Below are positions 337 through 57,784 of a stretch of 64,000 nt of DNA, in pieces. The number at the start of each line of letters is the position of its first letter. The first letter of the stretch is position 1. The notes beneath the pieces are model-generated. The model was given only the letters and a program-made list of their open reading frames with translations, ran no database searches and was not told where the DNA came from. This stretch comes from Paramoeba atlantica (Eukaryota; Protista; Discosea), in NCBI GenBank assembly GCA_977017575.1, contig CDRNVI010000059.1, forward strand, positions 415,113-479,112. Reading direction: 5' to 3'. Made by a program: the position numbers and the translations under genes.

Positions 337-367
337 TTGCGGTAGTAAAACTACCGCTCTAGCCTCG

Positions 368-22264: not shown

Positions 22265-24000
22265 CCTCCAACACGGTCGATTAAAAATGATACCATTTGG
22301 TCAGTACTTGATGAACTGTCTCTGATTGTGCTTCTGCGCAATATCCAGGACCTGACACAAGACACTAAACGGGAATCCATCACCGTTCCGTACAATGAAA
22401 CACTCACTGCTTGCGTAAGATGCAATACATGTGCAGTTTTCATTGGGAGCGAAGGCCCCGGCATAAAAATTATGCAGTATCTCATAAAATATATGAGCAA
22501 GAACATTGGTCCACCTGTGTACATTGTACCAGCACTTCGCGCAGCCAATGACCACCTTCAAAGGGGTCTGAATTCAGAGCACAGAGTGCAAACTGACATT
22601 CCGGTGGCACGCTTAGTTTTACAGAAATTGTCGAACATGACACATCGAAAGATGGAAGTTTCAATCGAAATGGCAACTGCCTTTTGTCTCGGCCAACCCT
22701 CCAGGTACATGAGCCATAACTTCACATGGATCAATATGAACCGTGTAATGAAGTTCCTGGCAAACATCTCAAGTGAGTTAGATCACAGATATATAGAAAT
22801 CAGTGACGATGATTCGTCACAAGACTCCGATATAGAGTTCGACAACGGTATCTTAGAGGCTCCTATAATGACCACCGAGCATGATTGTGCAGTTATTGCA
22901 CCGCTCCATGTGCGTTATATGCACAGGGGCGAAGATCTTCAAGACCTTGAACTGTATTCCTATACAGGCATTGTCAGCGTAAAGAAGAAAAGAGCTGAGC
23001 TAGCTCAAGAAGAGCCCGATCATGATTCAGATTTTGAGTCAGGGACAAATCGAAGACGTCGTCGCGGACGTCGTGCTAATGGGAGATACGCCTTTGAGGA
23101 AATTGAAGGCCTCCCGGAATTTAAGCCTGGATATATTGTTGAGCAACAGTTGCGCTCTTTGCACACTGTGCCAGCTATACCAGGTTTTCCCATATTGAGT
23201 TCTTCAAAAGAACCTGGGACACGAGCTCGAAGCCAGCTTCGAGTAGGGAAACGCATGGTGGCATTGTTTTCCCCATGGACGAAAGGCTCACCGAGCCATG
23301 AAATGACCCTAGAAGAGTTTAAAAAACTTCTCAATGAAGCGAAAGTAAATACGCCTGGAAAGTATGACACAATGTGCAACTTTCTTCGGCTTTTACATGC
23401 TTCTAAGAATACAGAGAACGCGGCAGATTTGTATAACGCAAAGATGCTTGCCATCTAGAAGAAGCAAGATTAGCACGCAACATTGTGTACGAAAATGAGC
23501 TTGAAGTCCGAGAGGTTGAACCTCATCTTCAAGATGCTCTTGAAGCACAGCAGAATACTGCAGTGGTCAATGAAGAGCGATTGGTTCAGCAGAATGCATA
23601 CTGCGAACTACAAACGCGAGCTTTAACGGCCGCGTTAGGAGGTTCTACTGAGAACTCCCCTGAAGAAAATGTTGATCTTGCATCGACAATGACAAGGACG
23701 AGGTCCAATATTTCAGTCATAAATGCGCGAGAGCGCTATACTGAAATGATTCAAAACGAGCGACCTGCAACTTCGGCTCAATCTGAGCCAAGTGCACCAG
23801 TGGACAGATCTCATTTCAATGAGGATCATCCACTTTTTTTTTTTTGGAATCAATACGAAGAGATTACGTTCGATCGCAGCTACATATGCGGAAATGAGCG
23901 GAAATGTATGTTTCTGCTCGGTGGCCCCGGAACCGGGGCAAGACCTGGGAAGCCAATGTATTGCAATGGCGCCCACTGGGATCGCCGCATCAGTACTGCA
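22265..24000 (+). pseudogene. Helitron/Helentron Rep-helicase remnant, part 1
   Basis: VPYNETLTACVRCNT...QYLIKYMSK (Rep motif with two Tyr); degenerate Walker A LLGGPGTG near 23910; APTGIAAS near 23970; frameshifted. Confidence 0.75.
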
Positions 24001-24174
24001 TTTTGAGATTCGTTCCCTGCAAGCTAAGAACATAAAATGTTATGTGAGTAAGGTATGTTATGTGAGTAATCACACAACGGTAATCCCCACTATGAAAAAG
24101 CGGATGCGTTAGCACTTGCAGGTTCTTGTAAGCCTGTTCCATCCCTGGAAATTAAGAGGAACAAAACGTTAAAT
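24001..24174 (+). pseudogene. 5'-truncated LINE, left piece (end of RNase H)
   Basis: KCYVSKV...HNGNPHYEKADALALAGS matches the RNase H KVKGH..N..NE.AD.LA motif. Confidence 0.75.
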
Positions 24175-24367
24175 AAGACTCACTTACTCACTCACTCTAC
24201 ACTAACTCCATAGAGTTAGTTAAGTATTTATCTATATTCATTCTTAAATTTCCTCATATTACTTTCGAACAACTTATTTTTCAAGTGGAAATTTCCCCCC
24301 AATACATTCCCCACTGCATACAGCTCAGTGTTCGCTTGCCCTGGTAGGTGGCCGCATTTCGTGGTTT

Positions 24368-27300
24368 CTAGCGGGGGCGACGCTTTGCTTGGGCTGTTTG
24401 ATTCCCGTCCCGTAGACTACCGCGGCGACAATTGGCACTGGTGTTAGGGATCCTTGCTACCTCTGGCATGCCAGGCTCGGAAAGGAGATCAGGATTTTGG
24501 CCTTTGCTTGTCGCGGCGGAGGTTTTGCGCTTTTTCTTCGAAGAGTTGCGCGAAAGAGCTGCTTTGGCTATTAAATCGCACTTCTCGTTGTAAATATTTC
24601 CGCAGTGACCTTTCACCTTAAAAACAAAAAGCTGCACACTATGCGTTTCGAAGCCTCGAAAAGCGTGTTCCAGATCCAAATATATATCGCTATTTGGAAG
24701 GCCTTCAAAACCAATCAAATAATACTTTTTTCTAATCACATTTGCAAAATGCCAAACTACCCAGGAATCCGTATGCAGTATGATTCTTTCCCTATCTTGT
24801 GGTGCCCTTTGTATGGCTGTTAGTGCCGCATATAGTTCCGCCCTCTCCGGCGAGCCGCAGCCTAAAGTTTCCTTGCAAATGGCAAAGCTTGACACTTCCT
24901 TCCCACATTGTACTTCAACCATTCCCAGCCCCATTTTCCCAATAAACCCAGAACTCACCGATGCATCAGAATAAATATGTAAAGCACCTTCGTCGATTAC
25001 AAATGGCGTGGTGCCTTCCTCCGCATACTGAAGATCCGATAAATTGGTATCCCGAAGTGCTGTTGAGGTAACCTTATGCCAACCTTTTCCCCGATAGCTC
25101 ACGTATGTTTTCTTGCGCCCAAGGCTAGATTGCAGATTCTCAACTTGGGTCTGCCAATATTTTCGATCCCCTGCATAGACCAATGCTTGTTCAATCATGA
25201 TCCCCATATCGCCCATGCAGGCTTCAGAAGGAGAATGAATCCTGCTTTTTTCTTTAACGTTCCACTGTACAAGCTCGGAATATATCTCCGAATGTCTTAT
25301 CAGGTGCCCTAGAAGTCGTGCCCGGTTTACCTTATGTAGTGTGGAGAATAACGGTGTGTCAACGTAAAGGGCTGTAAGAGGTATACTTTTCCCACGGTGG
25401 TCCAATTTTGGGCAACGACATATGATGCGACGCATTTTGTTTACCTGAATGTCTACCCAATTTAACGTTTTATCCGTCAATACAAGAGTACCTGAGTTAT
25501 AGTTCAGAACGGGGTAAACCAGTGTATCGAAAAGGCGAAGTTTAGTTTTCACAGATAGTGGTGATATCCATATTCCTTGAAATTTTGAGAAGCTTGCCCA
25601 GGTAAGCCGCACCCTGTCCCTAATGCACGCCTTGGGGTCCTGTTCATGAAAAAGGTGCCCTAGGTAACGGTAACTCTCGACGTGTGGAACCTTTCCCAAT
25701 GTATCGGATATTATTTCTTCGGTGTTGTTATTTTTTCCTATGCTCATCCAGGCGGATTTGGTGGGCCCAACAGCAATCTTTAAATTCGCAGCAAGGGCTT
25801 GCTCTGCTGTATCTTCCATCATGCTTTGCAAGTCTTCCTTGTCGCTCCCAAATAGGAGCAAATCGTCAGCATAATTCAGATCAGTGAGCCGCGTTTCCCG
25901 TAACACTCTGCTCCTCGTACCCTTCGATGATAATAAGATGCCGTGGGGTTTTGAATCTATTGCCTTAAATAATATTCGATCCAGGACCATAACAAAGAGG
26001 TACGGTGCGAGAACGTCGCCCTGTAGAATTCCTGTCGTGATGGGGAAAGCTTCCGTTAGCCCATACGGTGTACGAACGACGCCTCTCATATTGCGATAGA
26101 CCGACATAATCATTTCTACTAACTTGGGGCCAATGTGGAATGCTACCAGAGATGCCCTGATAGCATCAAACGAAACAGATGGAAAAGCCTTTGCAAAATC
26201 CACGAAACCAATGTTGAGCCCATTTTCCCGCAAAGCTTTAACTCTTGCTTCGTTGAGAATCGCCTGGGCTTGAGTTGTTGAGCGATCTGGTCGAAACCCA
26301 TATTGATTCTCGCGAAGCACGGGCTCCACATAAGGTCTCATTCGTTGCAAGATTAAACTGTTCATTAGTTTGACGATGCAATTCACTAAGCAAATAGGTC
26401 GCCAGTTCTTAAGAAGACTCAAATCACCCTTTTTTGGTATAGGAACTTGTAAGACATCACCCCAAACATCCGGAGCCATCCCAGTATCGTGAACTCTGTT
26501 TATGACACATAGCAGCCAATCTCGAAGTAACTCGTTACCAGCTATGCATTTCAAGGCTTCCATTGGGATTTCGTCTTTTCCTGGCGATTTTCCCCTACCA
26601 AAGTGTGAGATGCCAATTTGAAGCTCTTCTTCCGTAAAAGTGGAGTCGTTAATCGTGTTAGGGGATGGTTTGGCCTCAGGAAATTTTATATTCGTGTCCC
26701 CCCCGGCGTCTCCCGCAAAGGCTTCGAAGAATGATCTGATTTCCGCCAGCTTTTGTTTATTACAGGTCCCTGAAATCTTAAAATCGGCGCGATGAACTCC
26801 ACATATTTCTTTCAGAGCTCTCCATGGGCTGGCATGATTCTTCTTTAGTTTAGTTTCCAGGACATCACATGATTTGGCTATTTCTTCCTCTATTGGCACC
26901 TGTGTTTGTAAAACCAATTCATTGAAGTCCTTGTGCTTTCTGCTTAGCTCAAAGATTCTGCGCAAATAACCAGTTTCGGTTCCTTCGAGCGTTTCCATTG
27001 GCGAATCGATTTCAAGAGATATTTTGTTTTGTGGATTCGGAATTTCCCTGCCAGACGATCGAAGGCAAGAGGCAAGAAGGTCCCAGGAAGGGAAATCCTT
27101 GTTGTGCAGTTCGCCATTGACATGATCGCAGATTCGTTTGTTAAATTTTTCACTATGTTCTGGGTTAGAAAGTTGAAGCCAGGGAATCTTATTTCTGTGG
27201 GTATTTGTGGAAACTTTCCATTTGATCTTGATCTCGGCTCTCACCAGAAAGTGTACAGTTGGTGTTGGTGCGCCAAAATCTTGATGTTTATGTAGGGCAG

Positions 27301-28429
27301 ACGCAAAGCGCGAACACACTGCAATGTGATCGAGCTGTCGCTTAGCATCGTTCGGCAGTATACATGTATATTTACGGCGGCTTGGGCATAAGGTGTGCCC
27401 CGATTTACAATTTATTCCTTCTAAAAGGCCTTCTAATCTTTCCATTGATAGCGCGTCCTCTTCCGTCTTATTTTTAAAAGTGAGCGGTGCATTCAAATCT
27501 CCAAGGAGAAGAGCTGGCCGTCGTGAATATTTACCAACTGCGTCATGAAATGCAGTGGTGAGAGAAATGTCAAACACTTCCATTGCATCTTGTGAAGAAT
27601 CGCGCGTCGGCCTATATACGTTCATGATAAAGGCCGACCCCCCTTCTATAGTAAACTCGGCCCCCATGATCCTGTCACTCACCTTCCAAAACTTCAAAAA
27701 CGGATGCTGAGAGATAAACCCCATACCGTTGTACCCATTCACCGCCGACAAAAGGTAGATGAAAAAGTGTTTATCTCCGTACCGTAGTTGCCTGCGCAAA
27801 ATGTCAGACCCACCGCTAGAAGTAAAAGAGAATCTTGTTTCCTGTAAAGCCAGAACATGCAAATCTTTCTGAGCCATATATCGCAATGTTTCATGTAATC
27901 GGGAGGATGTTTTCAGTCTGAAAACGTCGTCGCCCTTAAGTTTCAACGAAGTCGTGTTAAGAGTTCCTATAGATAAATACTTCCTCACAGCAGACCCTTC
28001 AGGGTCGTTGTCGCGAAGAGCATGCTTGCCACACAGTGCCCTATTTTTACGTACTTTCTTTCGGGTATTCGAACGTCGAGGTTTCCGAATTCGCACCCCA
28101 CACAGCACTATACGTGGGTCATAGTTTCCGGTCAGCGTTTCCGATCGCCGGTAGTATTTCACCCGCCAGCGACCTAGCTGAAAGAGAGACCCATAACCTC
28201 TCTGTGTGACATCCCCCCTCCAAACCCGATACTCCGCAGCCCCCGCATATCGCCAGCACAGCGCGATGCAGTCACCAAGAATTTTACATATTCTCATCAC
28301 AGTATGCAGGCGAAGTTTAGCATGTCCATCAAAATCCAAAGTTGGTTCAAAAAGGACACCCCGACCTAACGTGGACCGTACTAGAAGATTCACTATACTC
28401 TTCTCGCAAGGCCCGGACGCCTTCGCCAT
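24368..28429 (-). CDS. Non-LTR retrotransposon polyprotein, 1353 aa: N-terminal domain, APE endonuclease, RT, RNase H
   Basis: APE (GTLN, LQETR, VYRPT, GDLNA, LDHI); RT (PKKGDL, NWRPICL, QYGFRPDRST, QGDVLAPYLF, YADD); RNase H (IYSDAS, AELYAA, HTDS, KVKGH, KCD); no stops or frameshifts. Confidence 0.96.
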   Translation of the reverse strand: MAKASGPCEKSIVNLLVRSTLGRGVLFEPTLDFDGHAKLRLHTVMRICKILGDCIALCWRYAGAAEYRVWRGDVTQRGYGSLFQLGRWRVKYYRRSETLTGNYDPRIVLCGVRIRKPRRSNTRKKVRKNRALCGKHALRDNDPEGSAVRKYLSIGTLNTTSLKLKGDDVFRLKTSSRLHETLRYMAQKDLHVLALQETRFSFTSSGGSDILRRQLRYGDKHFFIYLLSAVNGYNGMGFISQHPFLKFWKVSDRIMGAEFTIEGGSAFIMNVYRPTRDSSQDAMEVFDISLTTAFHDAVGKYSRRPALLLGDLNAPLTFKNKTEEDALSMERLEGLLEGINCKSGHTLCPSRRKYTCILPNDAKRQLDHIAVCSRFASALHKHQDFGAPTPTVHFLVRAEIKIKWKVSTNTHRNKIPWLQLSNPEHSEKFNKRICDHVNGELHNKDFPSWDLLASCLRSSGREIPNPQNKISLEIDSPMETLEGTETGYLRRIFELSRKHKDFNELVLQTQVPIEEEIAKSCDVLETKLKKNHASPWRALKEICGVHRADFKISGTCNKQKLAEIRSFFEAFAGDAGGDTNIKFPEAKPSPNTINDSTFTEEELQIGISHFGRGKSPGKDEIPMEALKCIAGNELLRDWLLCVINRVHDTGMAPDVWGDVLQVPIPKKGDLSLLKNWRPICLVNCIVKLMNSLILQRMRPYVEPVLRENQYGFRPDRSTTQAQAILNEARVKALRENGLNIGFVDFAKAFPSVSFDAIRASLVAFHIGPKLVEMIMSVYRNMRGVVRTPYGLTEAFPITTGILQGDVLAPYLFVMVLDRILFKAIDSKPHGILLSSKGTRSRVLRETRLTDLNYADDLLLFGSDKEDLQSMMEDTAEQALAANLKIAVGPTKSAWMSIGKNNNTEEIISDTLGKVPHVESYRYLGHLFHEQDPKACIRDRVRLTWASFSKFQGIWISPLSVKTKLRLFDTLVYPVLNYNSGTLVLTDKTLNWVDIQVNKMRRIICRCPKLDHRGKSIPLTALYVDTPLFSTLHKVNRARLLGHLIRHSEIYSELVQWNVKEKSRIHSPSEACMGDMGIMIEQALVYAGDRKYWQTQVENLQSSLGRKKTYVSYRGKGWHKVTSTALRDTNLSDLQYAEEGTTPFVIDEGALHIYSDASVSSGFIGKMGLGMVEVQCGKEVSSFAICKETLGCGSPERAELYAALTAIQRAPQDRERIILHTDSWVVWHFANVIRKKYYLIGFEGLPNSDIYLDLEHAFRGFETHSVQLFVFKVKGHCGNIYNEKCDLIAKAALSRNSSKKKRKTSAATSKGQNPDLLSEPGMPEVARIPNTSANCRRGSLRDGNQTAQAKRRPR

Positions 28430-28443
28430 GTTTTTGAAGAATA

Positions 28444-31400
28444 TTCAAAAAAACAAAGGTCTTCAAAAAAACAAAGGTCTTCAAAAACACTAACGTCTTC
28501 AAAAAAACAAAGGTCTTCAAAAAAACAAAGGTCTTCAAAAAAACAAAGGTCTTCAAAAAAACAAAGGTCTTCATAAAAACAAAGGTCTTCATAAAAACAA
28601 GGGTCTTCAAAAAAAACAAAGGTCTTCAAAAAAAAAACAAAGGTCTTCAAAAAAACAAAGGTCTTCAAAAAAACAAAGCTCTTCAAAAAAACAAAGGTCT
28701 TCAAAAAAACAAAGATCTTCAAAAAAGGAAAGGTCTTCAAAAAAACAAAGGTCTTCAAAAAAACAAAGGTCTTCAAAAAAACAAAGGTCTTCAAAAAAAC
28801 AAAGGTCTTCAAAAAAACAAAGGTCGTCAAAAAACAAAGGTCTTCAAAAAAACAAAGGTCTTCAAAAAAACAAAGGTCTTCAAAAAACAAAGGTCTTCAA
28901 AAAAACAAAGGTCTTCAAAAAATCAAAGGTCTTCAAAAAAACAAAGGTCTTTAAAAAAACAAAGGTCTTCAAAAAAACAAAGGTCTTCAAAAAAACAAAG
29001 GTCTTCAAAAAAACAAAGGTCTTCAAAAAAAAACAAAGGTCTTCAAAAAAACAAAGGTCTTCAAAAAAACAAAGGTCTTCAAAAAGACAAAGGTCTTCAA
29101 AAAAACAAAGGTCTTCAAAAAAACAAAGGTCTTCAAAAAAACAAAGGTCTTCAAAAAAACAAAGGTCTTCAAAAAAACAAAGGTCTTCAAAAAAACAAAG
29201 GTCTTCAAAAAAACAAAGGTCTTCAAAAAAACAAAGGTCTTCAAAAAAAAACAAAGGTCTTCAAAAAAACAAAGGTCTTCAAAAAAACAAAGGTCTTCAA
29301 AAAGACAAAGGTCTTCAAAAAAACAAAGGTCTTCAAAAAAACAAAGGTCTTTAGAAAAAACAAAGGTCTTCAAAAAAACAAAGGTCTTCAAAAAAGGAAA
29401 GGTCTTCAAAAAAACAAAGGTCTTCAAAAAAACAAAGGTCTTTAAAAAAAACAAAGGTCTTCAAAAAAACAAAGGTCTTCAAAAAAACAAAGGTCTTCAA
29501 AAAAACAAAGGTCTTCAAAAAAAAACAAAGGTCTTCAAAAAAACAAAGGTCTTCAAAAAAACAAAGATCTTCAAAAAAGGAAAGGTCTTCAAAAAAACAA
29601 AGGTCTTCAAAAAAAAACAAAGGTCTTCAAAAAAACAAAGGTCTTCAAAAAAACAAAGGTCTTCAAAAAAACAAAGGTCTTCAAAAAAAGAAAGGTCCTC
29701 AAAAAAACAAAGGTCTTTAGAAAAAACAAAGGTCTTCAAAAAAACAAAGGTCTTCAAAAAAACAAAGGTCTTCAAAAAAACAAAGGTCTTCAAAAAAACA
29801 AAGGTCTTCAAAAAAACAAAGGTCTTCAAAAAAACAAAGGTCTTCAAAAAAACAAAGGTCTTCAAAAAAACAAAGGTCTTCAAAAAAACAAAGGTCTTCA
29901 AAAAAACAAAGGTCTTCAAAAAAACAAAGGTCTTCAAAAAAACAAAGGTCTTCAAAAAAACAAAGGTCTTTAAAAAAAACAAAGGTCTTCAAAAAAACAA
30001 AGGTCTTCAAAAAAACAAAGGTCTTCAAAAAAACAAAGGTCTTCAAAAAAGCAAAGGTCTTCAAAAAAACAAAGGTCTTTAAAAAAAACAAAGGTCTTCA
30101 AAAAAACAAAGGTCTTCAAAAAAACAAAGGTCTTCAAAAAAACAAAGGTCTTCAAAAAAACAAAGGTCTTCAAAAAAACAAAGGTCTTCAAAAAAACAAA
30201 GGTCGTCAAAAAACAAAGGTCTTCAAAAAAACAAAGGTCTTCAAAAAAACAAAGGTCTTCAAAAAAACAAAGGTCTTCAAAAAAACAAAGGTCTTCAAAA
30301 AAACAAAGGTCTTCAAAAAAACAAAGGTCTTCAAAAAAACAAAGGTCTTCAAAAAAACAAAGGTCTTCAAAAAAACAAAGGTCTTCAAAAAAACAAAGGT
30401 CTTCAAAAAAACAAAGGTCTTCAAAAAAACAAAGGTCTTTAAAAAAAACAAAGGTCTTCAAAAAAACAAAGGTCTTCAAAAAAACAAAGGTCTTTAAAAA
30501 AAACAAAGGTCTTCAAAAAAACAAAGGTCTTCAAAAAAACAAAGGTCTTCAAAAAAACAAAAGTCTTCAAAAAAACAAAGGTCTTCAAAAAAACAAAGGT
30601 CTTCAAAAAAACAAAGGTCTTCAAAAAAACAAAGGTCTTTAAAAAAAACTAAGGTCTTCAAAAAAACAAAGGTCTTCAAAAAAACAAAGGTCTTCAAAAA
30701 AACAAAGGTCTTCAAAAAAACAAAGGTCTTCAAAAAAACAAAGGTCTTCAAAAAAACAAAGGTCTTCAAAAAAACAAAGGTCTTCAAAAAAACAAAGGTC
30801 TTCAAAAAAACAAAGGTCTTCAAAAAAACAAAGGTCTTCAAAAAAACAAAGGTCTTTAAAAAAAACAAAGGTCTTCAAAAAAACAAAGGTCTTCAAAAAA
30901 ACAAAGGTCTTCAAAAAAACAAAGGTCTTCAAAAAAACTAAGGTCTTCAAAAAAACAAAGGTCTTCAAAAAAACAAAGGTCTTCAAAAAAACAAAGGTCT
31001 TCAAAAAAACAAAGGTCTTCAAAAAAACAAAGGTCTTCAAAAAAACAAAGGTCTTCAAAAAAACAAAGGTCTTCAAAAAAACAAAGGTCTTCAAAAAAAC
31101 AAAGGTCTTCAAAAAAACAAAGGTCTTCAAAAAAACAAAGGTCTTCAAAAAAAATAAAGGTCTTCAAAAAAACAAAGGTCTTCAAAAAAACAAAGGTCTT
31201 CAAAAAAACAAAGGTCTTCAAAAAAAATAAAGGTCTTCAAAAAAAACAAAGGTCTTCAAAAAAACAAAGGTCTTCAAAAAAACAAAGGTCTTCAAAAAAA
31301 CAAAGGTCTTCAAAAAAACAAAGGTCTTCAAAAAAAATAAAGGTCTTCAAAAAAACAAAGGTCTTCAAAAAAACAAAGGTCTTCAAAAAAACAAAGGTCT

Positions 31401-34400
31401 TCAAAAAAACAAAGGTCTTCAAAAAAACAAAGGTCTTCAAAAAAACAAAGGCCTTCAAAAAAACAAAGGTCTTCAAAAAAACAAAGGTCTTCAAAAAAAC
31501 AAAGGTCGTCAAAAAACAAAGGTCTTCAAAAAAACAAAGGTCTTCAAAAAATCAAAGGTCTTCAAAAAAACAAAGGTCTTCAAAAAAACAAAGGTCTTCA
31601 AAAAAACAAAGGTCTTCAAAAAAACAAAGGTCTTCAAAAAAACAAAGGTCTTCAAAAAAACAAAGGTCTTCAAAAAAACAAAGGTCTTCAAAAAAAAACA
31701 AAGGTCTTCAAAAAAACAAAGGTCTTCAAAAAAACAAAGGTCTTCAAAAAAACAAAGGTCTTCAAAAAAACAAAGGTCTTCAAAAAAACAAAGGTCTTCA
31801 AAAAAACAAAGGTCTTTAAAAAAAACAAAGGTCTTCAAAAAAACAAAGGTCTTCAAAAAAACATAGGTCTTCAAAAAAACAAAGGTCTTCAAAAAAACAA
31901 AGGTCTTCAAAAAAAACAAAGGTCTTCAAAAAAACAAAGGTCTTCAAAAAAACAAAGGTCTTCAAAAAAACAAAGGTCTTCAAAAAAACAAAGGTCTTCA
32001 AAAAAAATAAAGGTCTTCAAAAAAACAAAGGTCTTCAAAAAAACAAAGGTCTTCAAAAAAACAAAGGTCTTCAAAAAAACAAAGGTCTTCAAAAAAACAA
32101 AGGTCTTCAAAAAAACAAAGGCCTTCAAAAAAACAAAGGCCTTCAAAAAAACAAAGGTCTTCAAAAAAACAAAGGTCGTCAAAAAACAAAGGTCTTCAAA
32201 AAAACAAAGGTCTTCAAAAAATCAAAGGTCTTCAAAAAAACAAAGGTCTTCAAAAAAACAAAGGTCTTCAAAAAAACAAAGGTCTTCAAAAAAACAAAGG
32301 TCTTCAAAAAAACAAAGGTCTTCAAAAAAACAAAGGTCTTCAAAAAAACAAAGGTCTTCAAAAAAACAAAGGTCTTCAAAAAAACAAAGGTCTTTAAAAA
32401 AAACAAAGGTCTTCAAAAAAACAAAGGTCTTCAAAAAAACAAAGGTCTTCAAAAAAACAAAGGTCTTCAAAAAAGCAAAGGTCTTCAAAAAAACAAAGGT
32501 CTTTAAAAAAAACAAAGGTCTTCAAAAAAACAAAGGTCTTCAAAAAAACAAAGGTCTTCAAAAAAACAAAGGTCTTCAAAAAAACAAAGGTCTTCAAAAA
32601 AACAAAGGTCTTCAAAAAAACAAAGGTCTTCAAAAAAACAAAGGTCTTCAAAAAAACAAAGGTCTTCAAAAAAACAAAGGTCTTCAAAAAAACAAAGGTC
32701 TTCAAAAAAACAAAGGTCTTCAAAAAAACAAAGGTCTTCAAAAAAACAAAGGTCTTCAAAAAAACAAAGGTCTTTAAAAAAAACAAAGGTCTTCAAAAAA
32801 ACAAAGGTCTTCAAAAAAACAAAGGTCTTTAAAAAAAACAAAGGTCTTCAAAAAAACAAAGGTCTTCAAAAAAACAAAGGTCTTCAAAAAAACAAAAGTC
32901 TTCAAAAAAACAAAGGTCTTCAAAAAAACAAAGGTCTTCAAAAAAACAAAGGTCTTCAAAAAAACAAAGGTCTTTAAAAAAAACTAAGGTCTTCAAAAAA
33001 ACAAAGGTCTTCAAAAAAACAAAGGTCTTCAAAAAAACAAAGGTCTTCAAAAAAACAAAGGTCTTCAAAAAAACAAAGGTCTTCAAAAAAACAAAGGTCT
33101 TCAAAAAAACAAAGGTCTTCAAAAAAACAAAGGTCTTCAAAAAAACAAAGGTCTTCAAAAAAACAAAGGTCTTCAAAAAAACAAAGGTCTTCAAAAAAAC
33201 AAAGGTCTTTAAAAAAAACAAAGGTCTTCAAAAAAACAAAGGTCTTCAAAAAAACAAAGGTCTTCAAAAAAACAAAGGTCTTCAAAAAAACTAAGGTCTT
33301 CAAAAAAACAAAGGTCTTCAAAAAAACAAAGGTCTTCAAAAAAACAAAGGTCTTCAAAAAAACAAAGGTCTTCAAAAAAACAAAGGTCTTCAAAAAAACA
33401 AAGGTCTTCAAAAAAACAAAGGTCTTCAAAAAAACAAAGGTCTTCAAAAAAACAAAGGTCTTCAAAAAACAAAGGTCTTCAAAAAAACAAAGGTCTTCAA
33501 AAAAACAAAGGTCTTCAAAAAAACAAAGGTCTTCAAAAAAACAAAGGTCGTCAAAAAACAAAGGTCTTCAAAAAAACAAAGGTCTTCAAAAAAACAAAGG
33601 TCTTCAAAAAAACAAAGGTCTTCAAAAAAACAAAGGTCTTCAAAAAAACAAAGGTCTTCAAAAAATCAAAGGTCTTCAAAAAAACAAAGGTCTTCAAAAA
33701 AACAAAGGTCTTCAAAAAAACAAAGGTCTTTAAAAAAAACAAATCTCTTCAAAAAAACAAAGGTCTTCAAAAAAACAAAGGTCTTCAAAAAAACAAAGGT
33801 CTCCAAAAAAACAAAGGTCTTCAAAAAAACAAAGGTCTTCAAAAAAACAAAGGTCTTCAAAAAAACAAAGGTCTTCAAAAAAACAAAGGTCTTCAAAAAA
33901 ACAAAGGTCTTCAAAAAAACAAAGGTCTTCAAAAAAACAAAGGTCTTCAAAAAAACAAAGGTCTTCAAAAAAACAAAGGTCTTTAAAAAAAACAAAGGTC
34001 TTCAAAAAAACAAAGGTCTTCAAAAAAACATAGGTCTTCAAAAAAACAAAGGTCTTCAAAAAAACAAAGGTCTTCAAAAAAAACAAAGGTCTTCAAAAAA
34101 ACAAAGGTCTTCAAAAAAACAAAGGTCTTCAAAAAAACAAAGGTCTTCAAAAAAACAAAGTTCTTCAAAAAAAATAAAGGTCTTCAAAAAAACAAAGGTC
34201 TTCAAAAAAACAAAGGTCTTCAAAAAAACAAAGGTCTTCAAAAAAACAAAGGTCTTCAAAAAAACAAAGGTCTTCAAAAAAACAAAGGCCTTCAAAAAAA
34301 CAAAGGTCTTCAAAAAAACAAAGGTCTTCAAAAAAACAAAGGTCGTCAAAAAACAAAGGTCTTCAAAAAAACAAAGGTCTTCAAAAAATCAAAGGTCTTC

Positions 34401-46400: not shown

Positions 46401-49400
46401 GTCTTCAAAAAATCAAAGGTCTTCAAAAAATCAAAGGTCTTCAAAAAAAACAAAGGTCTTCAAAAAAACAAAGGTCTTCAAAAAAACAAAGGTCTTCAAA
46501 AAAACAAAGGTCTTCAAAAAAACAAAGGTCTTCAAAAAAACAAAGGTCTTCAAAAAACAAAGGTCTTCAAAAAAACAAAGGTCTTCAAAAAAACAAAGGT
46601 CTTTAAAAAAAACAAAGGTCTTCAAAAAAACAAAGGTCTTCAAAAAAACAAAGGTCTTCAAAAAAACAAAGGTCTTCAAAAAAACAAAGGTCTTCAAAAA
46701 AACAAAGGTCTTCAAAAAAACAAAGGTCTTCAAAAAAACAAAGGTCTTCAAAAAAAACAAAGGTCTTCAAAAAAACAAAGGTCTTCAAAAAAACAAAGGT
46801 CTTCAAAAAAACAAAGGTCTTCAAAAAAACAAAGGTCTTCAAAAAAACAAAGGTCTTCAAAAAAAATAAAGGTCTTCAAAAAAACAAAGGTCTTCAAAAA
46901 AACAAAGGTCTTCAAAAAAACAAAGGTCTTCAAAAAAAAAAAGGTCTTCAAAAAAACAAAGGTCTTCAAAAAAACAAAGGCCTTCAAAAAAACAAAGGTC
47001 GTCAAAAAACAAAGGTCTTCAAAAAAACAAAGGTCTTCAAAAAAACAAAGGTCTTCAAAAAAACAAAGGTCTTCAAAAAAAAACAAAGGTCTTCAAAAAA
47101 ACAAAGGTCTTCAAAAAAACAAAGGTCTTCAAAAAAACAAAGGTCTTCAAAAAAACAAAGGTCTTCAAAAAAACAAAGGTCTTTAAAAAAAACAAAGGTC
47201 TTCAAAAAAACAAAGGTCTTCAAAAAAACAAAGGTCTTCAAAAAAACAAAGGTCTTCAAAAAAATAAAGGTCTTCAAAAAAACAAAGGTCTTCAAAAAAA
47301 CAAAGGTCTTCAAAAAAACAAAGGTCTTCAAAAAAACAAGGGTCTTCAAAAAAAATAAAGGTCTTCAAAAAAACAAAGGTCTTCAAAAAAAAACAAAGGT
47401 CTTCAAAAAAAAACAAAGGTCTTCAAAAAAACAAAGGTCTTCAAAAAAACAAAGGTCTTCAAAAAAACCAAGGTCTTCAAAAAAAGAAAGGTCTTCAAAA
47501 AAACAAAGGTCTTCAAAAAAACAAAGGTCTTCAAAAAAACAAAGGTCTTCAAAAAAACAAAGGTCTTTAAAAAAAACAAAGGTCTTCAAAAAAACAAAGG
47601 TCTTCAAAAAAACAAAGCTCTTCAAAAAAACAAAGCTCTTCAAAAAAACAAAGGTCTTCAAAAAAACAAAGGTCTTCAAAAAAACAAAGGTCTTTAAAAA
47701 AACAAAGGTCTTCAAAAAAACAAAGGTCTTCAAAAAAACAAAGGTCTTCAAAAAAACAAAGGTCTTCAAAAAAACAAAGGTCTTCAAAAAATCAAAGGTC
47801 TTCAAAAAATCAAAGGTCTTCAAAAAAAACAAAGGTCTTCAAAAAAACAAAGGTCTTCAAAAAAACAAAGGTCTTCAAAAAAACAAAGGTCTTCAAAAAA
47901 ACAAAGGTCTTCAAAAAAACAAAGGTCTTCAAAAAACAAAGGTCTTCAAAAAAACAAAGGTCTTCAAAAAAACAAAGGTCTTTAAAAAAAACAAAGGTCT
48001 TCAAAAAAACAAAGGTCTTCAAAAAAACAAAGGTCTTCAAAAAAACAAAGGTCTTCAAAAAAACAAAGGTCTTTAAAAAAAACAAAGGTCTTCAAAAAAA
48101 CAAAGGTCTTCAAAAAAACAAAGGTCTTCAAAAAAACAAAGGTCTTCAAAAAAACAAAGGTCTTCAAAAAAACAAAGGTCTTCAAAAAAACAAAGGTCTT
48201 CAAAAAAACAAAGGTCTTCAAAAAATCAAAGGTCTTCAAAAAAACAAAGGTCTTCAAAAAAACAAAGGTCTTCAAAAAAACAAAGGTCTTCAAAAAAACA
48301 AAGGTCTTTAAAAAAAACAAAGGTCTTCAAAAAAACAAAGGTCTTCAAAAAAACAAAGGTCTTCAAAAACACAAAGGTCTTCAAAAAAACAAAGGTCTCC
48401 AAAAAAACAAAGGTCTTCAAAAAAACAAAGGTCTTCAAAAAAACAACGGTCTTCAAAAAAACAAAGGTCTTCAAAAAAACAAAGGTCTTTAAAAAAAACA
48501 AAGGTCTTCAAAAAAACAAAGGTCTTCAAAAAAACAAAGGTCTTCAAAAAAACAAAGGTCTTCAAAAAAACAAAGGTCTTCAAAAAAACAAAGGTCTTCA
48601 AAAAAACAAAGGTCTTCAAAAAAACAAAGGTCTTCAAAAAAAGAAAGGTCTTCAAAAAAACAAAGGTCTTCAAAAAAACAAAGGTCTTCAAAAAAACAAA
48701 GGTCTTCAAAAAAACAAAGGTCTTCAAAAAAACAAAGGTCTTCAAAAAAACAAAGGTCTTCAAAAAAACAAAGGTCTTCAAAAAAACAAAGGTCTTCAAA
48801 AAAACAAACGTCTTCAAAAAAACAAAGGTCTTTAAAAAAAACAAAGGTCTTCAAAAAAACAAAGGTCTTCAAAAAAACAAAGGTCTTCAAAAAAACAAAG
48901 GTTTTCAAAAAAACAGAGGTCTCCAAAAAAACAAAGGTCTTCAAAAAAACAAAGGTCTTCAAAAAAACAAAGGTCTTCAAAAAAACAAAGGTCTTCAAAA
49001 AAACAAAGGTCTTCAAAAAAACAAAGGTCTTCAAAAAAACAAAGGTCTTCAAAAAAACAAAGGTCTTCAAAAAAACAAAGGTCTTTAAAAAAAACAAAGG
49101 TCTTCAAAAAAACAAAGGTCTTCAAAAAAACAAAGGTCTTCAAAAAAACAAAGGTCTTCAAAAAAACAAAGGTCTTCAAAAAAACAACGGTCTTCAAAAA
49201 AACAAAGGTCTTCAAAAAAACAAAGGTCTTTAAAAAAAACAAAGGTCTTCAAAAAAACAAAGGTCTTCAAAAAAACAAAGGTCTTCAAAAAAACAAAGGT
49301 CTTCAAAAAAACAAAGGTCTTCAAAAAAACAAAGGTCTTCAAAAAAACAAAGGTCTTCAAAAAAACAAAGGTCTTCAAAAAAACAAAGGTCTTCAAAAAA

Positions 49401-52400
49401 ACAAAGGTCTTCAAAAAAACAAAGGTCTTCAAAAAAACAAAGGTCTTCAAAAAAAGAAAGGTCTTCAAAAAAACAAAGGTCTTCAAAAAAACAAAGGTCT
49501 TCAAAAAAACAAAGGTCTTCAAAAAAACAAAGGTCTTCAAAAAAACAAAGGTCTTCAAAAAAACAAAGGTCTTCAAAAAAACAAAGGTCTTCAAAAAAAC
49601 AAAGGTCTTCAAAAAAACAAAGGTCTTTAAAAAAAATAAAGGTCTTCAAAAAAACAAAGGTCTTCAAAAAAACAAAGGTCTTCAAAAAAAAACAAAGGTC
49701 TTCAAAAAAACAAAGGTCTTCAAAAAAACAAAGGTCTTCAAAAAAACAAAGGTCTTCAAAAAAACAAAGGTCTTCAAAAAAACAAAGGTCTCCAAAAAAA
49801 CAAAGGTCTTCAAAAAAACAAAGGTCTTCAAAAAAACAAAGGCCTTCTAAAAAACAAAGGTCTTCAAAAAAGCAAAGGTCTTTAAAAAAAACAAAGGTCT
49901 TCAAAAAAACAAAGGTCTTCAAAAAAACAAAGGTCTTCAAAAAAAGAAAGGTCTTCAAAAAAACAAAGGTCTTCAAAAAAACAAAGGTCTTCAAAAAAAC
50001 AAAGGTCTTTAAAAAAATCAAAGGTCTTCAAAAAAACAAAGGTCTTCAAAAAAACAAAGGTCTTCAAAAAAAAACAAAGGTCTTCAAAAAAACAAAGGTC
50101 TTCAAAAAAACAAAGGTCTTCAAAAAAACAAAGGTCTTCAAAAAAACAAAGGTCTTCAAAAAAACAAAGGTCTTCAAAAAAACAAAGGTCTTCAAAAAAA
50201 CAAAGGTCTTCAAAAAAACTAAGGTCTTCAAAAAAACAAAGGTCTTCAAAAAAACAAAGGTCTTCAAAAAAACAAAGGTCTTCAAAAAAACAAAGGTCTT
50301 CAAAAAAACAAAGGTCTTCAAAAAAACAAAGGTCTTCAAAAAAACAAAGGTCTTCAAAAAAACAAAGGTTTTCAAAAAAACAAAGGTCTTCAAAAAAACA
50401 AAGGTCTTCAAAAAAACAAAGGTCTTCAAAAAAACAAAGGTCTTCAAAAAAACAAAGGTCTTCAAAAAAACAAAGGTCTTCAAAAAAACAAAGGTCTTCA
50501 AAAAAACAAAGGTCGTCAAAAAACAAAGGTCTTCAAAAAAACAAAGGTCTTCAAAAAAACAAAGGTCTTCAAAAAAACAAAGGTCTTCAAAAAAACAAAG
50601 GTCTTCAAAAAAACAAAGGTCTTTAAAAAAAACAAAGGTCTTCAAAAAAACAAAGGTCTTCAAAAAAACAAAGGTCTTCAAAAAAACAAAGGTCTTCAAA
50701 AAAACAAAGGTCTTCAAAAAAACAAAAATCTTCAAAAAAACAAAGGTCTTCAAAAAAACAAAGGTCTTCAAAAAAACAAAGGTTTTCAAAAAAACAAAGG
50801 TCTTCAAAAAAACAAAGGTCTTCAAAAAAACAAAGGTCTTCAAAAAAACAAAGGTCTTCAAAAAAACAAAGGTCTTCAAAAAAACAAAGGTCTTCAAAAA
50901 AACAAAGGTCTTCAAAAAAACAAAGGTCTTTAAAAAAAACAAAGGTCTTCAAAAAAACAAAGGTCTTCAAAAAAACAAAGGTCTTCAAAAAAACAAAGGT
51001 CTTCAAAAAATCAAAGGTCTTCAAAAAAACAAAGGTCTTCAAAAAAACAAAGGTCTTCAAAAAAACAAAGGTCTTCAAAAAAACAAAGGTCTTTAAAAAA
51101 AACAAAGGTCTTCAAAAAAACAAAGGTCTTCAAAAAAACAAAGGTCTTCAAAAAAACAAAGGTTTTCAAAAAAACAAAGGTCTCCAAAAAACCAAAGTCT
51201 TCTAAAAAACAAAGGTCTTCAAAAAAACAAAGGTCTTCAAAAAAACAAAGGTCTTCAAAAAAACAAAGGTCTTTAAAAAAAACAAAGGTCTTCAAAAAAA
51301 CAAAGGTCTTCAAAAAAACAAAGGTCTTCAAAAAAAAACAAACGTCTTCAAAAAAACAAAGGTCTTCAAAAAAACAAAGGTCTTCAAAAAAACAAAGGTC
51401 TTCAAAAAAACAAAGGTCTTCAAAAAAACAAAGGTCTTCAAAAAAACAAAGGTCTTCAAAAAAACAAAGGTCTTCAAAAAAAGAAAGGTCTTCAAAAAAA
51501 ACAAAGGTCTTCAAAAAAACAAAGGTCTTCAAAAAAACAAAGGTCTTCAAAAAAACAAAGGTCTTCAAAAAAACAAAGGTCTTCAAAAAAACAAAGGTCT
51601 TCAAAAAAACAAAGGTCTTCAAAAAAACAAAGGTTTTCAAAAAAACAAAGGTCTTCAAAAAAACAAAGGTCTTCAAAAAAACAAAGGTCTTCAAAAAAAC
51701 AAAGGTTTTCAAAAAAACAAAGGTCTTCAAAAAAACAAAGGTCTTCAAAAAAACAAAGGTCTTCAAAAAAACAAAGGTCTTCAAAAAAACAAAGGTCTTC
51801 AAAAAAACAAAGGTCTTCAAAAAAACAAAGGTCGTCAAAAAACAAAGGTCTTCAAAAAAACAAAGGTCTTCAAAAAAACAAAGGTCTTCAAAAAAACAAA
51901 GGTCTTCAAAAAAACAAAGGTCTTCAAAAAAACAAAGGTCTTCAAAAAAAAACAAAGGTCTTCAAAAAAACAAAGGTCTTCAAAAAAACAAAGGTCTTCA
52001 AAAAAACAAAGGTCTTCAAAAAAACAAAGGTCTTCAAAAAAACAAAGGTCTTCAAAAAAACAAAGGTCTTCAAAAAAACAAAGGTCTTCAAAAAAACCAA
52101 GGTCTTCAAAAAAAACAAAGGTCTTCAAAAAAACAAAGGTCTTCAAAAAAACAAAGGTCTTCAAAAAAACAAAGGTCTTCAAAAAAACAAAGGTCTTCAA
52201 AAAAACAAAGGTCTTCAAAAAAACAAAGGTCTTCAAAAAAACAAAGGTCTTCAAAAAGACAAAGGTCTTCAAAAAAACAAAGGTCTCCAAAAAAACAAAG
52301 GTCTTCAAAAAAACAAAGGTCTTCAAAAAAACAAAGGCCTTCTAAAAAACAAAGGTCTTCAAAAAAGCAAAGGTCTTTAAAAAAAACAAAGGTCTTCAAA

Positions 52401-55400
52401 AAAACAAAGGTCTTCAAAAAATCAAAGGTCTTCAAAAAAACAAAGGTCTTCAAAAAAACAAAGGTCTTCAAAAAAACAAAGGTCTTCAAAAAAACAAAGG
52501 TCTTCAAAAAAACAAAGGTCTTCAAAAAAACAAAGGTCTTCAAAAAAACAAAGGTCTTTAAAAAAAACAAAGGTCTTCAAAAAAACAAAGGTCTTCAAAA
52601 AAACAAAGGTCTTCAAAAAAAAACAAAGGTCTTCAAAAAAACAAAGGTCTTCAAAAAAACAAAGGTCTTCAAAAAAACAAAGGTCTTCAAAAAAACAAAG
52701 GTCTTCAAAAAAACAAAGGTCTTCAAAAAAACAAAGGTCTTCAAAAAAACAAAGGTCTTCAAAAAAAACAAAGGTCTTCAAAAAAACAAAGGTCTTCAAA
52801 AAAACAAAGGTCTTCAAAAAAACAAAGGTCTTCAAAAAAACAAAGGTCTTCAAAAAAACAAAGGTCTTCAAAAAAACAAAGGTCTTCAAAAAAACAAAGG
52901 TTTTCAAAAAAACAAAGGTCTTCTAAAAAACAAAGGTCTTCAAAAAAACAAAGGTCTTCAAAAAAACAAAGGTCTTCAAAAAAACAAAGGTCTTCAAAAA
53001 AACAAAGGTCTTCAAAAAAACAAAGGTCTTCAAAAAAACAAAGGTCGTCAAAAAACAAAGGTCTTCAAAAAAACAAAGGTCTTCAAAAAAACAAAGGTCT
53101 TCAAAAAAACAAAGGTCTTCAAAAAAACAAAGGTCTTCAAAAAAACAAAGGTCTTTAAAAAAAACAAAGGTCTTCAAAAAAACAAAGGTCTTCAAAAAAA
53201 TAAAGGTCTTCAAAAAAACAAAGGTCTTCAAAAAAACAAAGGTCTTCAAAAAAACAAAGATCTTCAAAAAAACAAAGGTCTTCAAAAAAACAAAGGTCTT
53301 CAAAAAAACAAAGGTTTTCAAAAAAACAAAGGTCTCCAAAAAAACAAAGGTCTTCAAAAAAACAAAGGTCTTCAAAAAAACAAAGGCCTTCTAAAAAACA
53401 AAGGTCTTCAAAAAAGCAAAGGTCTTTAAAAAAAACAAAGGTCTTCAAAAAAACAAAGGTCTTCAAAAAAACAAAGGTCTTCAAAAAAACAAAGGTCTTC
53501 AAAAAAACAAAGGTCTTCAAAAAAAGAAAGGTCTTTAAAAAAAACAAAGGTCTTCAAAAAAACAAAGGTCTTCAAAAAAACAAAGGTCTTCAAAAAAAAA
53601 CAAAGGTCTTCAAAAAAACAAAGGTCTTCAAAAAAACAAAGGTCTTCAAAAAAACAAAGGTCTTCAAAAAAAATAAAGGTCTCCAAAAAAACAAAGGTCT
53701 TCAAAAAAACAAAGGTCTTCAAAAAAACAAAGGTCTTCAAAAAAACAAAGGTCTTCAAAAAAACAAAGGTCTTCAAAAAAACAAAGGTCTTTAAAAAAAA
53801 CAAAGGTCTTCAAAAAAACAAAGGTCTTCAAAAAAACAAAGGTCTTCAAAAAAACAAAGGTCTTCAAAAAAAAACAAAGGTCTTCAAAAAAACAAAGGTC
53901 TTCAAAAAAACAAAGGTCTTCAAAAAAACAAAGGTCTTCAAAAAAACAAAGGTCTTCAAAAAAACAAAGGTCTTCAAAAAAAAACAAAGGTCTTCAAAAA
54001 AACAAAGGTCTTCAAAAAAACAAAGGTCTTCAAAAAAACAAAGGTCTTCAAAAAAACAAAGGTCTTCAAAAAAACAAAGGTCTTCAAAAAAACAAAGGTC
54101 TTCAAAAAAACAAAGGTCTTCAAAAAAACAAAGGTCTTCAAAAAAAACAAAGGTCTTCAAAAAAACAAAGGTCTTCAAAAAAACAAAGGTCTTCAAAAAA
54201 ACAAAGGTCTTCAAAAAAACAAAGGTCTTCAAAAAAACAAAGGTCTTCAAAAAAACAAAGGTCTTCAAAAAAACAAAGGTCTTCAAAAAGACAAAGGTCT
54301 TCAAAAAAACAAAGGTCTCCAAAAAAACAAAGGTCTTCAAAAAAACAAAGGTCTTCAAAAAAACAAAGGCCTTCTAAAAAACAAAGGTCTTCAAAAAAGC
54401 AAAGGTCTTTAAAAAAAACAAAGGTCTTCAAAAAAACAAAGGTCTTCAAAAAATCAAAGGTCTTCAAAAAAACAAAGGTCTTCAAAAAAACAAAGGTCTT
54501 CAAAAAAACAAAGGTCTTCAAAAAAACAAAGGTCTTCAAAAAAACAAAGGTCTTCAAAAAAACAAAGGTCTTCAAAAAAACAAAGGTCTTTAAAAAAAAC
54601 AAAGGTCTTCAAAAAAACAAAGGTCTTCAAAAAAACAAAGGTCTTCAAAAAAAAACAAAGGTCTTCAAAAAAACAAAGGTCTTCAAAAAAACAAAGGTCT
54701 TCAAAAAAACAAAGGTCTTCAAAAAAACAAAGGTCTTCAAAAAAACAAAGGTCTTCAAAAAAACAAAGGTCTTCAAAAAAACAAAGGTCTTCAAAAAAAA
54801 CAAAGGTCTTCAAAAAAACAAAGGTCTTCAAAAAAACAAAGGTCTTCAAAAAAACAAAGGTCTTCAAAAAAACAAAGGTCTTCAAAAAAACAAAGGTCTT
54901 CAAAAAAACAAAGGTCTTCAAAAAAACAAAGGTTTTCAAAAAAACAAAGGTCTTCTAAAAAACAAAGGTCTTCAAAAAAACAAAGGTCTTCAAAAAAACA
55001 AAGGTCTTCAAAAAAACAAAGGTCTTCAAAAAAACAAAGGTCTTCAAAAAAACAAAGGTCTTCAAAAAAACAAAGGTCGTCAAAAAACAAAGGTCTTCAA
55101 AAAAACAAAGGTCTTCAAAAAAACAAAGGTCTTCAAAAAAACAAAGGTCTTCAAAAAAACAAAGGTCTTCAAAAAAACAAAGGTCTTTAAAAAAAACAAA
55201 GGTCTTCAAAAAAACAAAGGTCTTCAAAAAAATAAAGGTCTTCAAAAAAACAAAGGTCTTCAAAAAAACAAAGGTCTTCAAAAAAACAAAGATCTTCAAA
55301 AAAACAAAGGTCTTCAAAAAAACAAAGGTCTTCAAAAAAACAAAGGTTTTCAAAAAAACAAAGGTCTCCAAAAAAACAAAGGTCTTCAAAAAAACAAAGG

Positions 55401-56618
55401 TCTTCAAAAAAACAAAGGCCTTCTAAAAAACAAAGGTCTTCAAAAAAGCAAAGGTCTTTAAAAAAAACAAAGGTCTTCAAAAAAACAAAGGTCTTCAAAA
55501 AAACAAAGGTCTTCAAAAAAACAAAGGTCTTCAAAAAAACAAAGGTCTTCAAAAAAAGAAAGGTCTTTAAAAAAAACAAAGGTCTTCAAAAAAACAAAGG
55601 TCTTCAAAAAAACAAAGGTCTTCAAAAAAAAACAAAGGTCTTCAAAAAAACAAAGGTCTTCAAAAAAACAAAGGTCTTCAAAAAAACAAAGGTCTTCAAA
55701 AAAAATAAAGGTCTTCAAAAAAACAAAGGTCTTCAAAAAAACAAAGGTCTTCAAAAAAAAACAAAGGTCTGCAAAAAAACAAAGGTCTTCAAAAAAACAA
55801 AGGTCTTCAAAAAAACAAAGGTCTTCAAAAAAACAAAGGTCTTCAAAAAAACAAAGGTCTTCAAAAAAACAAAGGTCTTTAAAAAAAACAAAGGTCTTCA
55901 AAAAAACAAAGGTCTTCAAAAAAACAAAGGTCTTCAAAAAAACAAAGGTCTTCAAAAAAACAAAGGTCTTCAAAAAAACAAAGGTCTTCAAAAAAAAACA
56001 AAGGTCTTCAAAAAAACAAAGGTCTTCAAAAAAACAAAGGTCTTCAAAAAAACAAAGGTCTTCAAAAAAACAAAGGTCTTCAAAAAAAGAAAGGTCTTCA
56101 AAAAAAGAAATGTCTTCAAAAAAACAAAGGTCTTCAAAAAAACAAAGGTCTTCAAAAAAACAAAGGTCTTCAAAAAAACAAAGGTCTTCAAAAAGCAAAG
56201 GTCTTCAAAAAAACAAAGGTCTCCAAAAAAACAAAGGTCTTCAAAAAAACAAAGGTCTTCAAAAAAACAAAGGCCTTCAAAAAAACAAAGGTCTTCAAAA
56301 AAACAAAGGTCTTCAAAAAAACAAAGGTCTTCAAAAAAACAAAGGTCTTCAAAAAACAAAGGTCTTCAAAAAAACAAAGGTCTTCAAAAAAACAAAGGTC
56401 TTCAAAAAAACAAAGGTCTTCAAAAAAACAAAGGTCTTCAAAAAAACAAAGGTCTTCAAAAAAGCAAAGGTCTTCAAAAAACAAAGGTCTTCAAAAAAAC
56501 AAAGGTCTTCAAAAAAACAAAGGTCTTCAAAAAAACAAAGGTCTTCAAAAAAACAAAGGTCTTCAAAAAAACAAAGGTCTTCAAAAAAACAAAGGTCTTC
56601 AAAAAAGGAAAGGTCTTC
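28444..56618. repeat. Satellite array, 18-bp monomer CAAAGGTCTTCAAAAAAA, roughly 1560 monomers (length/18), 72% AT
   Basis: Directly visible; A-tract length variants and point variants recur in higher-order blocks. Confidence 0.99.
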
Positions 56619-56917
56619 AATGTCCAGCGTGTTGCCAAAAACAAACGCAAGATATCTAATACTGGGGGGGAACCGGTCAACAAAAGGGGTATATTACTTC
56701 CTACTAGTGCTGGAGTAAAATCGTCCGAAGAGAGTGAGGATCTAACCCTGGAAGCTGATTATGTTGGAAAAGATAAAAGTTATGAACAATTAAGAGTGCT
56801 TCTTGAAAAAGTGGATAATAAGAGGGAAGATTCACCTAGGAGGAAGGTGTCTTTACGAAAAACAAAACAGTAGTTTTATCAGCCGATGTAAATCGGACTT
56901 TTTGGATTGGATTTGAT
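56619..56917 (+). pseudogene. 5'-truncated LINE, right piece (ORF C-terminus, 3' hairpin, TTGGA tail)
   Basis: Open frame NVQRVAKNKRK...RKTKQ*, then CCGAT-GTAA-ATCGG at 56883-56896 and TTTTTGGATTGGATTTG, followed by TSD AGTACTGCA. Confidence 0.75.
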
Positions 56918-57709: not shown

Positions 57710-57784
57710 GCTTTAATTGTAGGCAATTGGGATTTGCCTACACGTATCACAAAGTACAAGGAATTAACGTGAAGAACGGTGTTT

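Follow-up and report, generated by a model that had tools for sequence, protein, structure and literature searches.

How does a satellite of 28.2 kb come to stand directly in front of a single retrotransposon whose reading frame is still open? The question is raised by a 64,000-bp stretch of the Paramoeba atlantica genome (contig CDRNVI010000059.1, positions 415,113 to 479,112 of the forward strand; hereafter the window), in which a minus-strand long interspersed nuclear element (LINE) adjoins an uninterrupted array of 18-bp repeats. Tandem Repeats Finder (TRF) revealed a single array at 28444-56620 with a period of 18, 1557.3 copies and 96% matches, and tiling of the minus strand with the consensus gave 1557 monomers. 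An earlier reading made from the sequence letters (the original prediction) had put the number at about 1,560, and its count, coordinates and description of the array proved correct. Most monomers (1380 of 1557) were 18 nt long and the remainder 17-21 nt, and the tiling covered the 28 kb completely, without any foreign insertion. The GC content falls to 27.5% in the array, with a strong AT skew. The consensus made up 70% of the monomers, and the other 30% comprised 58 types of variant, of which many recurred. The monomer is part of the LINE, and its copy number varies widely among near-identical copies of the element; the array itself consists of blocks and is young compared with the LINE body. 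We consider it likely that the LINE's own terminal monomers were amplified in place after insertion, by block duplication, to about 1,557 copies.

Read on the minus strand, the array runs from its last monomer in phase into TATTCTTCAAAAAC and then into the ATG at 28429, confirming what had been predicted for this junction. Folding predicted that TTCAAAAA, which precedes the ATG, pairs with TTTTTGAA, the 3′ half of the last monomer, to give an 8-bp hairpin. Pfam matches to Exo_endo_phos (amino acids 178-315, E=1.9e-5) and RVT_1 (amino acids 664-925, E=4e-30) were found in the open reading frame (ORF) that follows, both exceeding the curated cut-offs, and RNase_H matches covered the C-terminal part in gene calls on other copies and relatives. 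Reverse transcriptase (RT) and endonuclease domains thus lie in one ORF, as in non-long-terminal-repeat (non-LTR) retrotransposons (LINEs) of the apurinic/apyrimidinic endonuclease (APE) type. By the single-ORF APE-RT-RNase H domain order alone, the Ingi/I-type clade is a candidate affiliation. No monomer was found at the 3′ junction of the LINE (24175) or at the 3′ end of any copy examined. The original prediction had likewise seen no satellite at 24175, and the insertion of the LINE into an existing array was set aside. These LINEs lack poly-A and carry short microsatellite tails at their 3′ ends, which are (GTGA)n, (GGATT)n or (TAGG)n depending on the subfamily (window 24175-24205; L002:14840-14868; L003:13540-13573; L001:12780-12830; L011:4795-4820).

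We then considered other copies of the same subfamily. A word-index protein search with the full ORF returned relatives at no more than 28% identity, and an exhaustive representative search returned fragments at 95-97%, which led to contigs of the ENA assembly ERZ24900291. Six loci carried copies with 97.4-98.8% nucleotide identity to the window element. All three sister copies that kept their 5′ ends (L001, L002 and L007) bore the same monomer in phase. Every 5′-complete copy found had the monomer, and the number ranged from 9.6 through 48 and 94 to 1557 among four copies at this level of identity, in the manner of the monomeric 5′ untranslated region (UTR) of mouse L1. In L002 a 12-bp target-site duplication (TSD), TGACGCAGTTCA, encloses the whole array together with the LINE. 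Three further copies (L003, L004 and L005) were 5′-truncated with a common 3′ end, which, along with the TSDs, is typical of LINEs. The 5′ ends of copies started at differing monomer phases. The arrays of the sister copies had no variant pattern in common, indicating that each array grew independently, and the monomers at the distal edge were degenerate in L002, L006 and L007. The element that splits the L002 array (L002:6955-7410) contains several short GC-rich hairpins, and its presence suggests that small arrays last long enough to be struck by other transposons. An exact look-up of the 1353-amino-acid ORF returned no record, and no second assembly of the locus was found by exact-protein search.

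The same design was found in six further LINE subfamilies, each with one or more monomers (1-21) followed by a hairpin, an ATG and an xASG N-terminus. Folding each sequence separately gave an 8-11-bp stem between the last monomer and the pre-ATG segment in seven of seven subfamilies, and the stem sequences differed between the seven, that is, they covaried. RNAalifold, run on a MAFFT alignment of the seven 5′ modules that was not structure-aware, missed the hairpin seen in the individual folds. Furthermore, three full-length relatives with 36-39% amino acid identity, from three unrelated metagenome samples, also started with 18-bp monomers; these were unrelated in sequence, and each contig breaks off within the array. 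The 18-bp monomeric 5′ end thus appears to be a hallmark of this LINE clade, its period conserved while its sequence diverges. The clade-wide occurrence of monomers and their in-phase position in the copies argue against insertion into, or transduction of, a pre-existing satellite. Phase, hairpin pairing, other copies, subfamilies and relatives all support the prediction that the array belongs to the element and that the family seeds arrays. Arrays without a LINE body were also observed. The array at the start of the window ends at a nested repeat insertion (339) and has no LINE body attached within the window, and an orphan array at L002:17742-18077 (minus strand) consists of 18.7 identical copies of GACCCTTTCTTTTGTTAA (100% homogeneous), followed by no hairpin, ATG or LINE body. 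Two copies of the GACCCTTTCTTTTGTTAA unit were also seen at L004:3720-3755.

To describe the internal organization of the 28-kb array, monomers were written as a string of variant symbols, in which long ordered patterns recurred at many lags. A block scan yielded 15 pairs with scores of 14 or more, separated by lags of 37-224 monomers (~0.7-4 kb), and in 20 shuffles of the symbol string no block reached even a score of 8. The near-identical blocks spanned 34-100 monomers (0.6-1.8 kb) at displacements of 37-194 monomers, and 63% of monomers lay inside a recognisable pair. For example, monomers 51-150 were repeated 112 monomers further on with 1 difference in 1812 bp, and monomers 644-706 were repeated at a lag of 61 with 0 differences in 1140 bp; seven block pairs totalling 7,271 bp differed at 9 sites. 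Several three-copy series with stepwise differences were also present. These ordered, near-identical blocks point to repeated tandem duplication at the DNA level, not to the re-copying of one template monomer.

The age of the array was then compared with that of the LINE body, counting private changes at sites covered by at least three other copies in agreement. In 3948 comparable nt, the body differed privately at 24 positions (0.61%; 18 nonsynonymous and 6 synonymous changes), compared with 0.21-1.22% in other copies. The pattern is neutral, as expected of a dead-on-arrival copy, and with about 24 random hits it is unremarkable that the ORF remains open. The original prediction had supposed that the ORF stayed unmutated while the array grew; this does not hold, since the frame is open yet carries this neutral private change. 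If the 28 kb had been present since insertion, ~172 independent substitutions would be expected, and we observed 22 singleton monomers and 42 substitution variant types. Unique variants in the array were ~8 times rarer than the divergence of the body predicts, suggesting that the insertion is much older than the greater part of the array. Singletons were enriched at the LINE-proximal edge (4/20 versus 18/1537; Fisher p=1.3e-4) and more weakly at the distal edge, which fits an array whose edges escape while its interior is homogenised by unequal exchange. In addition, no transposable element has inserted in the 28-kb array amid a densely nested neighbourhood, and the 1.7-kb array of L002 has one insertion, so recent growth or turnover is indicated.

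What did the LINE insert into? As predicted, the flanks join in frame through a shared AAT, and the plus-strand frame across the join is open for 35 + 83 codons. The original prediction had taken the flanks for two halves of one older LINE, which the sequence contradicts. Read by eye across frameshifts, helicase motifs I and Ia lie to the left of the junction and Ib, II and III to the right, in the correct order for a Pif1/Helitron helicase. Among stop-free pieces of the flanks, Pfam gave a weak PIF1 match (E=0.048) for one piece of the right flank, and phmmer searches of the PDB with two pieces returned nothing. A tblastn search with the LINE ORF found no match in the flanks (22262-24174 and 56619-57376). 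The sole homologue of the 418-amino-acid ORF of the left flank had 86% amino acid identity over a third of the query and was located on the ENA contig L008, where positions 10355-11977 are 93% identical in nucleotide sequence to window 22262-23871 and lie directly downstream of a Helitron_like_N gene. Owing to the helicase motifs and this paralog, the host reads as a decayed Helitron fragment, not a LINE, and both flanks very probably belong to one contiguous stretch of that fragment. Motifs Ia and Ib are separated by ~440 bp of sequence that is not helicase-like, and the junction lies in this interval. No copy of the host Helitron was present at the other loci examined. The genome contains Helitrons and DDE transposons, which speaks against a trypanosomatid, since a recent survey states that the TE clades known from trypanosomatids number only four and are all retrotransposons (PMC12278014). 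One nested copy of a sister subfamily was associated with a target deletion of ~60 bp. Because junction types vary in this way within the LINE family, the 3-bp AAT match is acceptable, if weak, as a TSD.

Based on these results, we propose that a LINE with one to many 18-bp monomers and a hairpin would have inserted, on the minus strand, into the Helitron fragment, and that its terminal monomers would then have been amplified in place by many rounds of multi-monomer block duplication, either through unequal sister-chromatid exchange or through replication slippage with template switching. We infer both the molecular process (exchange or replication-based) and the number of monomers at insertion. 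Several observations weigh against this proposal. A paralogous empty site was not recovered, the sole paralog (L008) being interrupted by another insertion ~300 bp before the site, and the putative TSD in the window is only 3 bp, compared with TSDs of 12 and 10 bp in L002 and L003, respectively. Part of the body's private divergence could derive from an unsampled master lineage and not from decay after insertion. The length and block structure of the array come from one assembly, and the exact ORF is not recorded elsewhere. Moreover, some small arrays are 100% homogeneous (the 18.7 copies at L002:17742-18077 and 4.2 copies in L001), which, with the near-universal presence of more than one monomer, leaves room for a seeding step linked to retrotransposition. 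Such seeding at the RNA or RT level could consist of copying long multi-monomer transcripts with random 5′ truncation, or of the cDNA re-priming on a further monomer.

Other explanations have to account for the same data. The size of the array might be an assembly artefact, mis-overlapped reads of a shorter array having created false block duplications. The 99.5-100% identity of the block pairs and the lack of the locus in a second assembly by exact-protein look-up would suit this, but the blocks occur at many lags, the three-copy series differ stepwise, unique markers are distributed along the entire array, and an independent assembly holds such arrays at 48 and 94 monomers. We regard an artefact as unlikely. 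It has also to be asked whether retrotransposition itself made the array, which would then have arrived mostly full, the RT re-aligning its cDNA on a monomer at the 5′ end of the RNA and re-copying it, much as in telomerase or strong-stop strand transfer. Multi-monomer 5′ ends throughout the clade with an 18-bp period kept as the sequence diverges, the complete homogeneity of certain arrays, the various monomer phases at which copies begin, and the numbers of substitution variants in L002 and L007, which approximate those predicted from body divergence for arrays as old as their insertions, are all in line with such a process. For the window array, it predicts independent, unordered errors where long, ordered, near-identical blocks at many lags were found; neither the roughly eightfold shortage of unique changes nor the contrast between degenerate edges and homogenised interior agrees with it, and a cDNA of ~32 kb would be required. 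As the source of this array it is very unlikely. Of the two mechanisms offered in the original prediction, therefore, post-insertion unequal exchange or segmental duplication is favoured for the bulk of the array, and re-copying by the RT is left with a minor share.

It is more improbable still that the satellite came first, the LINE having landed at the border of an existing array, or upstream satellite sequence having been transduced by a read-through transcript. The short putative TSD, the unrecovered empty site and the orphan arrays (window 1-338; L002:17742-18077) could be read in this way. Against this, the monomer and the pre-ATG segment of the element itself are complementary and their pairing covaries among subfamilies, the same monomer stands in phase in every 5′-complete copy of the subfamily, no monomer occurs at any 3′ end, the array of L002 lies within the 12-bp TSD, and the helicase motifs run in the correct order across both flanks. 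Two further candidates were rejected. Since the monomers consist of a pyrimidine tract followed by AG, they were considered as trans-splice acceptors that would feed retrotransposition; the 5′ junctions open directly with monomers and show no leader. Site-specific insertion into the satellite was discarded because monomers are missing from the 3′ ends of all copies examined.

We tentatively raise the idea, which we consider doubtful, that the 18-nt monomer is a working part of retrotransposition in this clade, in which the freed 3′ end of the cDNA re-pairs with another monomer. In such a cycle, the RT-RNase H would copy the terminal monomer, and the cDNA would re-pair on the same or a second RNA and be copied again, resembling retroviral strong-stop transfer or telomerase. 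By analogy with retroviral RTs, the 18-nt period would roughly match their spacing between polymerase and RNase H. If this were true, each new insertion would come with a monomer run of variable length, open to later inflation by DNA-level exchange, and the clade would be an intrinsic generator of satellites.

The features described here are collected in Table 1. Several other repeats were found around them. A repeat of ~900 bp with short hairpins at its start was present in at least 5 copies with 90-98% identity in the window (21677-22264, 368-1278, 3294-4178, 8952-9864 and 63028-63960). The copy at 21677-22264 runs directly into the Helitron coding fragment, suggesting that the family may be a non-autonomous derivative with the 5′ end of the Helitron. 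A repeat of ~350-420 bp with a tRNA-like segment (16202-16625, 20505-20928 and 57376-57711; 89-96% identity) looks like a tRNA-derived short interspersed nuclear element (SINE), and its copy at 57376-57711 lies directly upstream of the LINE 5′ end at 57785. Tandem repeats of 59-69 bp (CACGTGCCACTG...CACTGCAT type) at window 19767-20420 and L001:4832-5385 belong to one family and are directly upstream of the 5′ monomers of two minus-strand LINE subfamilies, and could be an extra 5′ part of those LINEs or a preferred target. At L006:7830-8443, five tRNA genes lie within 620 bp, ~1.2 kb upstream of the 5′ end of the LINE with 21 monomers. In the window and three of the loci, tRNAs were the only Rfam matches, so that no taxonomic marker was obtained.

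Table 1. Coordinates of the array, the LINE, its host and related 5′ ends (positions refer to the window unless a locus is named).
Feature	Position	Strand	Details
Putative 3-bp TSD (AAT), copy 1	24172-24174	+	matches AAT at 56619-56621
Putative 3-bp TSD (AAT), copy 2	56619-56621	+	matches AAT at 24172-24174
Host element, left half (putative decayed Helitron fragment)	22262-24174	+	P-loop GGPGTG, APTGIAA across frameshifts
Host element, right half (putative Helitron fragment)	56622-57376	+	TIHASL, LIIVNEVS, PYGGINMLFVG..QL
LINE 3′ UTR	24175-24367	-	(GTGA)n-like tail, no poly-A; tails of other copies are cleaner (GTGA)n
LINE ORF, 1353 codons, open	24368-28429	-	N-terminal region with xASG motif, then APE, RT and RNase H-like C-terminus
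Unique 5′ UTR segment TATTCTTCAAAAAC	28430-28443	-	adjoins ATG
Array of 18-bp unit GACCTTTGTTTTTTTGAA, 1557 monomers	28444-56618	-	TRF and tiling, variant map
Same subfamily, 5′ end kept	L001		9.6 monomers
Same subfamily, 5′ end kept	L007		48 monomers
Same subfamily, 5′ end kept	L002		11 + 83 monomers (94), split by 456-bp nested insertion
Another subfamily, 5′ end	57785-57833	+	2 x GACCATCTTTTTGTTAA, hairpin, ATG; TRF, folding
Third subfamily, 5′ end, nested in the element at 57785	58903-58933	+	1 x GATCAACCTTTTTGTAA, hairpin, ATG
Fourth subfamily, 5′ end	19665-19714	-	2 monomers of ~16-17 bp (..TTTTTGTATTAA), 11-bp hairpin, ATG
Further subfamily, 5′ end	L001:8634		4.2 monomers
Further subfamily, 5′ end	L001:4230		15 monomers
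Sister subfamily (70% amino acid identity), 5′ end	L006:10001		21 monomers
Distant relative, 18-bp monomer GATAAGGGTGTTCATTTT	L009:1-70		
Distant relative, 18-bp monomer ATATTTTTTAGTGTGTTT	L010:1-145		at least 7 copies
Distant relative, 18-bp monomer AAAAGATTGTTTTAAAGG	L011:1-115		5.9 copies
Second array, related monomer GACAACGTTTTTTATTAA	1-338	+	at least 18.7 copies; cut by window start

The closest known parallel in design is the 5′ UTR of mouse L1, whose monomers (A, F, Tf and Gf types) are ~200 bp long and number a handful per copy. Both have a LINE 5′ end made of tandem monomers that adjoins the coding region, with monomer counts that differ from copy to copy and monomer sequences that change between subfamilies under a constant design. 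In contrast to L1, the unit here is 17-18 bp and occurs in 1-1,557 copies, the last monomer is paired to a short inverted segment before the ATG, a hairpin that is not known in L1, and a single ORF includes an RNase H domain. Transposon-derived satellites are themselves known. Those described as arising from internal tandem repeats of transposons include PisTR-A from the Ogre 3′ UTR and examples from DINE-1/Helitron, Tetris, CRM and SINEs (PMC9659126, PMC4079207, PMC3648361, PMC10702118), and the table of one review lists LINE-derived satellites from the 3′ UTR or ORF2 and UTR repeats of LTR elements, with no LINE 5′ terminal monomer among its entries (PMC9659126). As in those cases, a short internal repeat has probably been amplified by unequal exchange at the DNA level, and arrays appear to have arisen at several loci independently; the monomer has its homologue in one defined region of the LINE, the 5′ end, and DNA-level expansion is seen in the block duplications, the young interior and the edge effects. 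Unlike in those cases, the array here remains joined to its mother element, which retains an open ORF and is bounded by the junctions of its insertion. Our literature searches found no description of 18-bp LINE 5′ monomers or of this LINE clade.

Collectively, these data capture the birth of a satellite out of 18-bp monomers at the 5′ end of a LINE whose ORF is still open. The early steps by which satellites are born from transposons are seldom caught, and at this locus the mother element, the boundaries and the variant map are all visible. With 9.6, 21, 48, 94 and 1,557 monomers, the copies form a size series, and the history of duplication can be read from the variant map. Furthermore, the case defines a LINE clade with an 18-bp monomeric 5′ end, represented both in this genome and by relatives from three unrelated environmental samples. 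Should the monomers serve as promoters or as signals for RT handling, the clade would provide a compact model of how monomeric LINE 5′ ends, such as those of mouse L1, are made and maintained.

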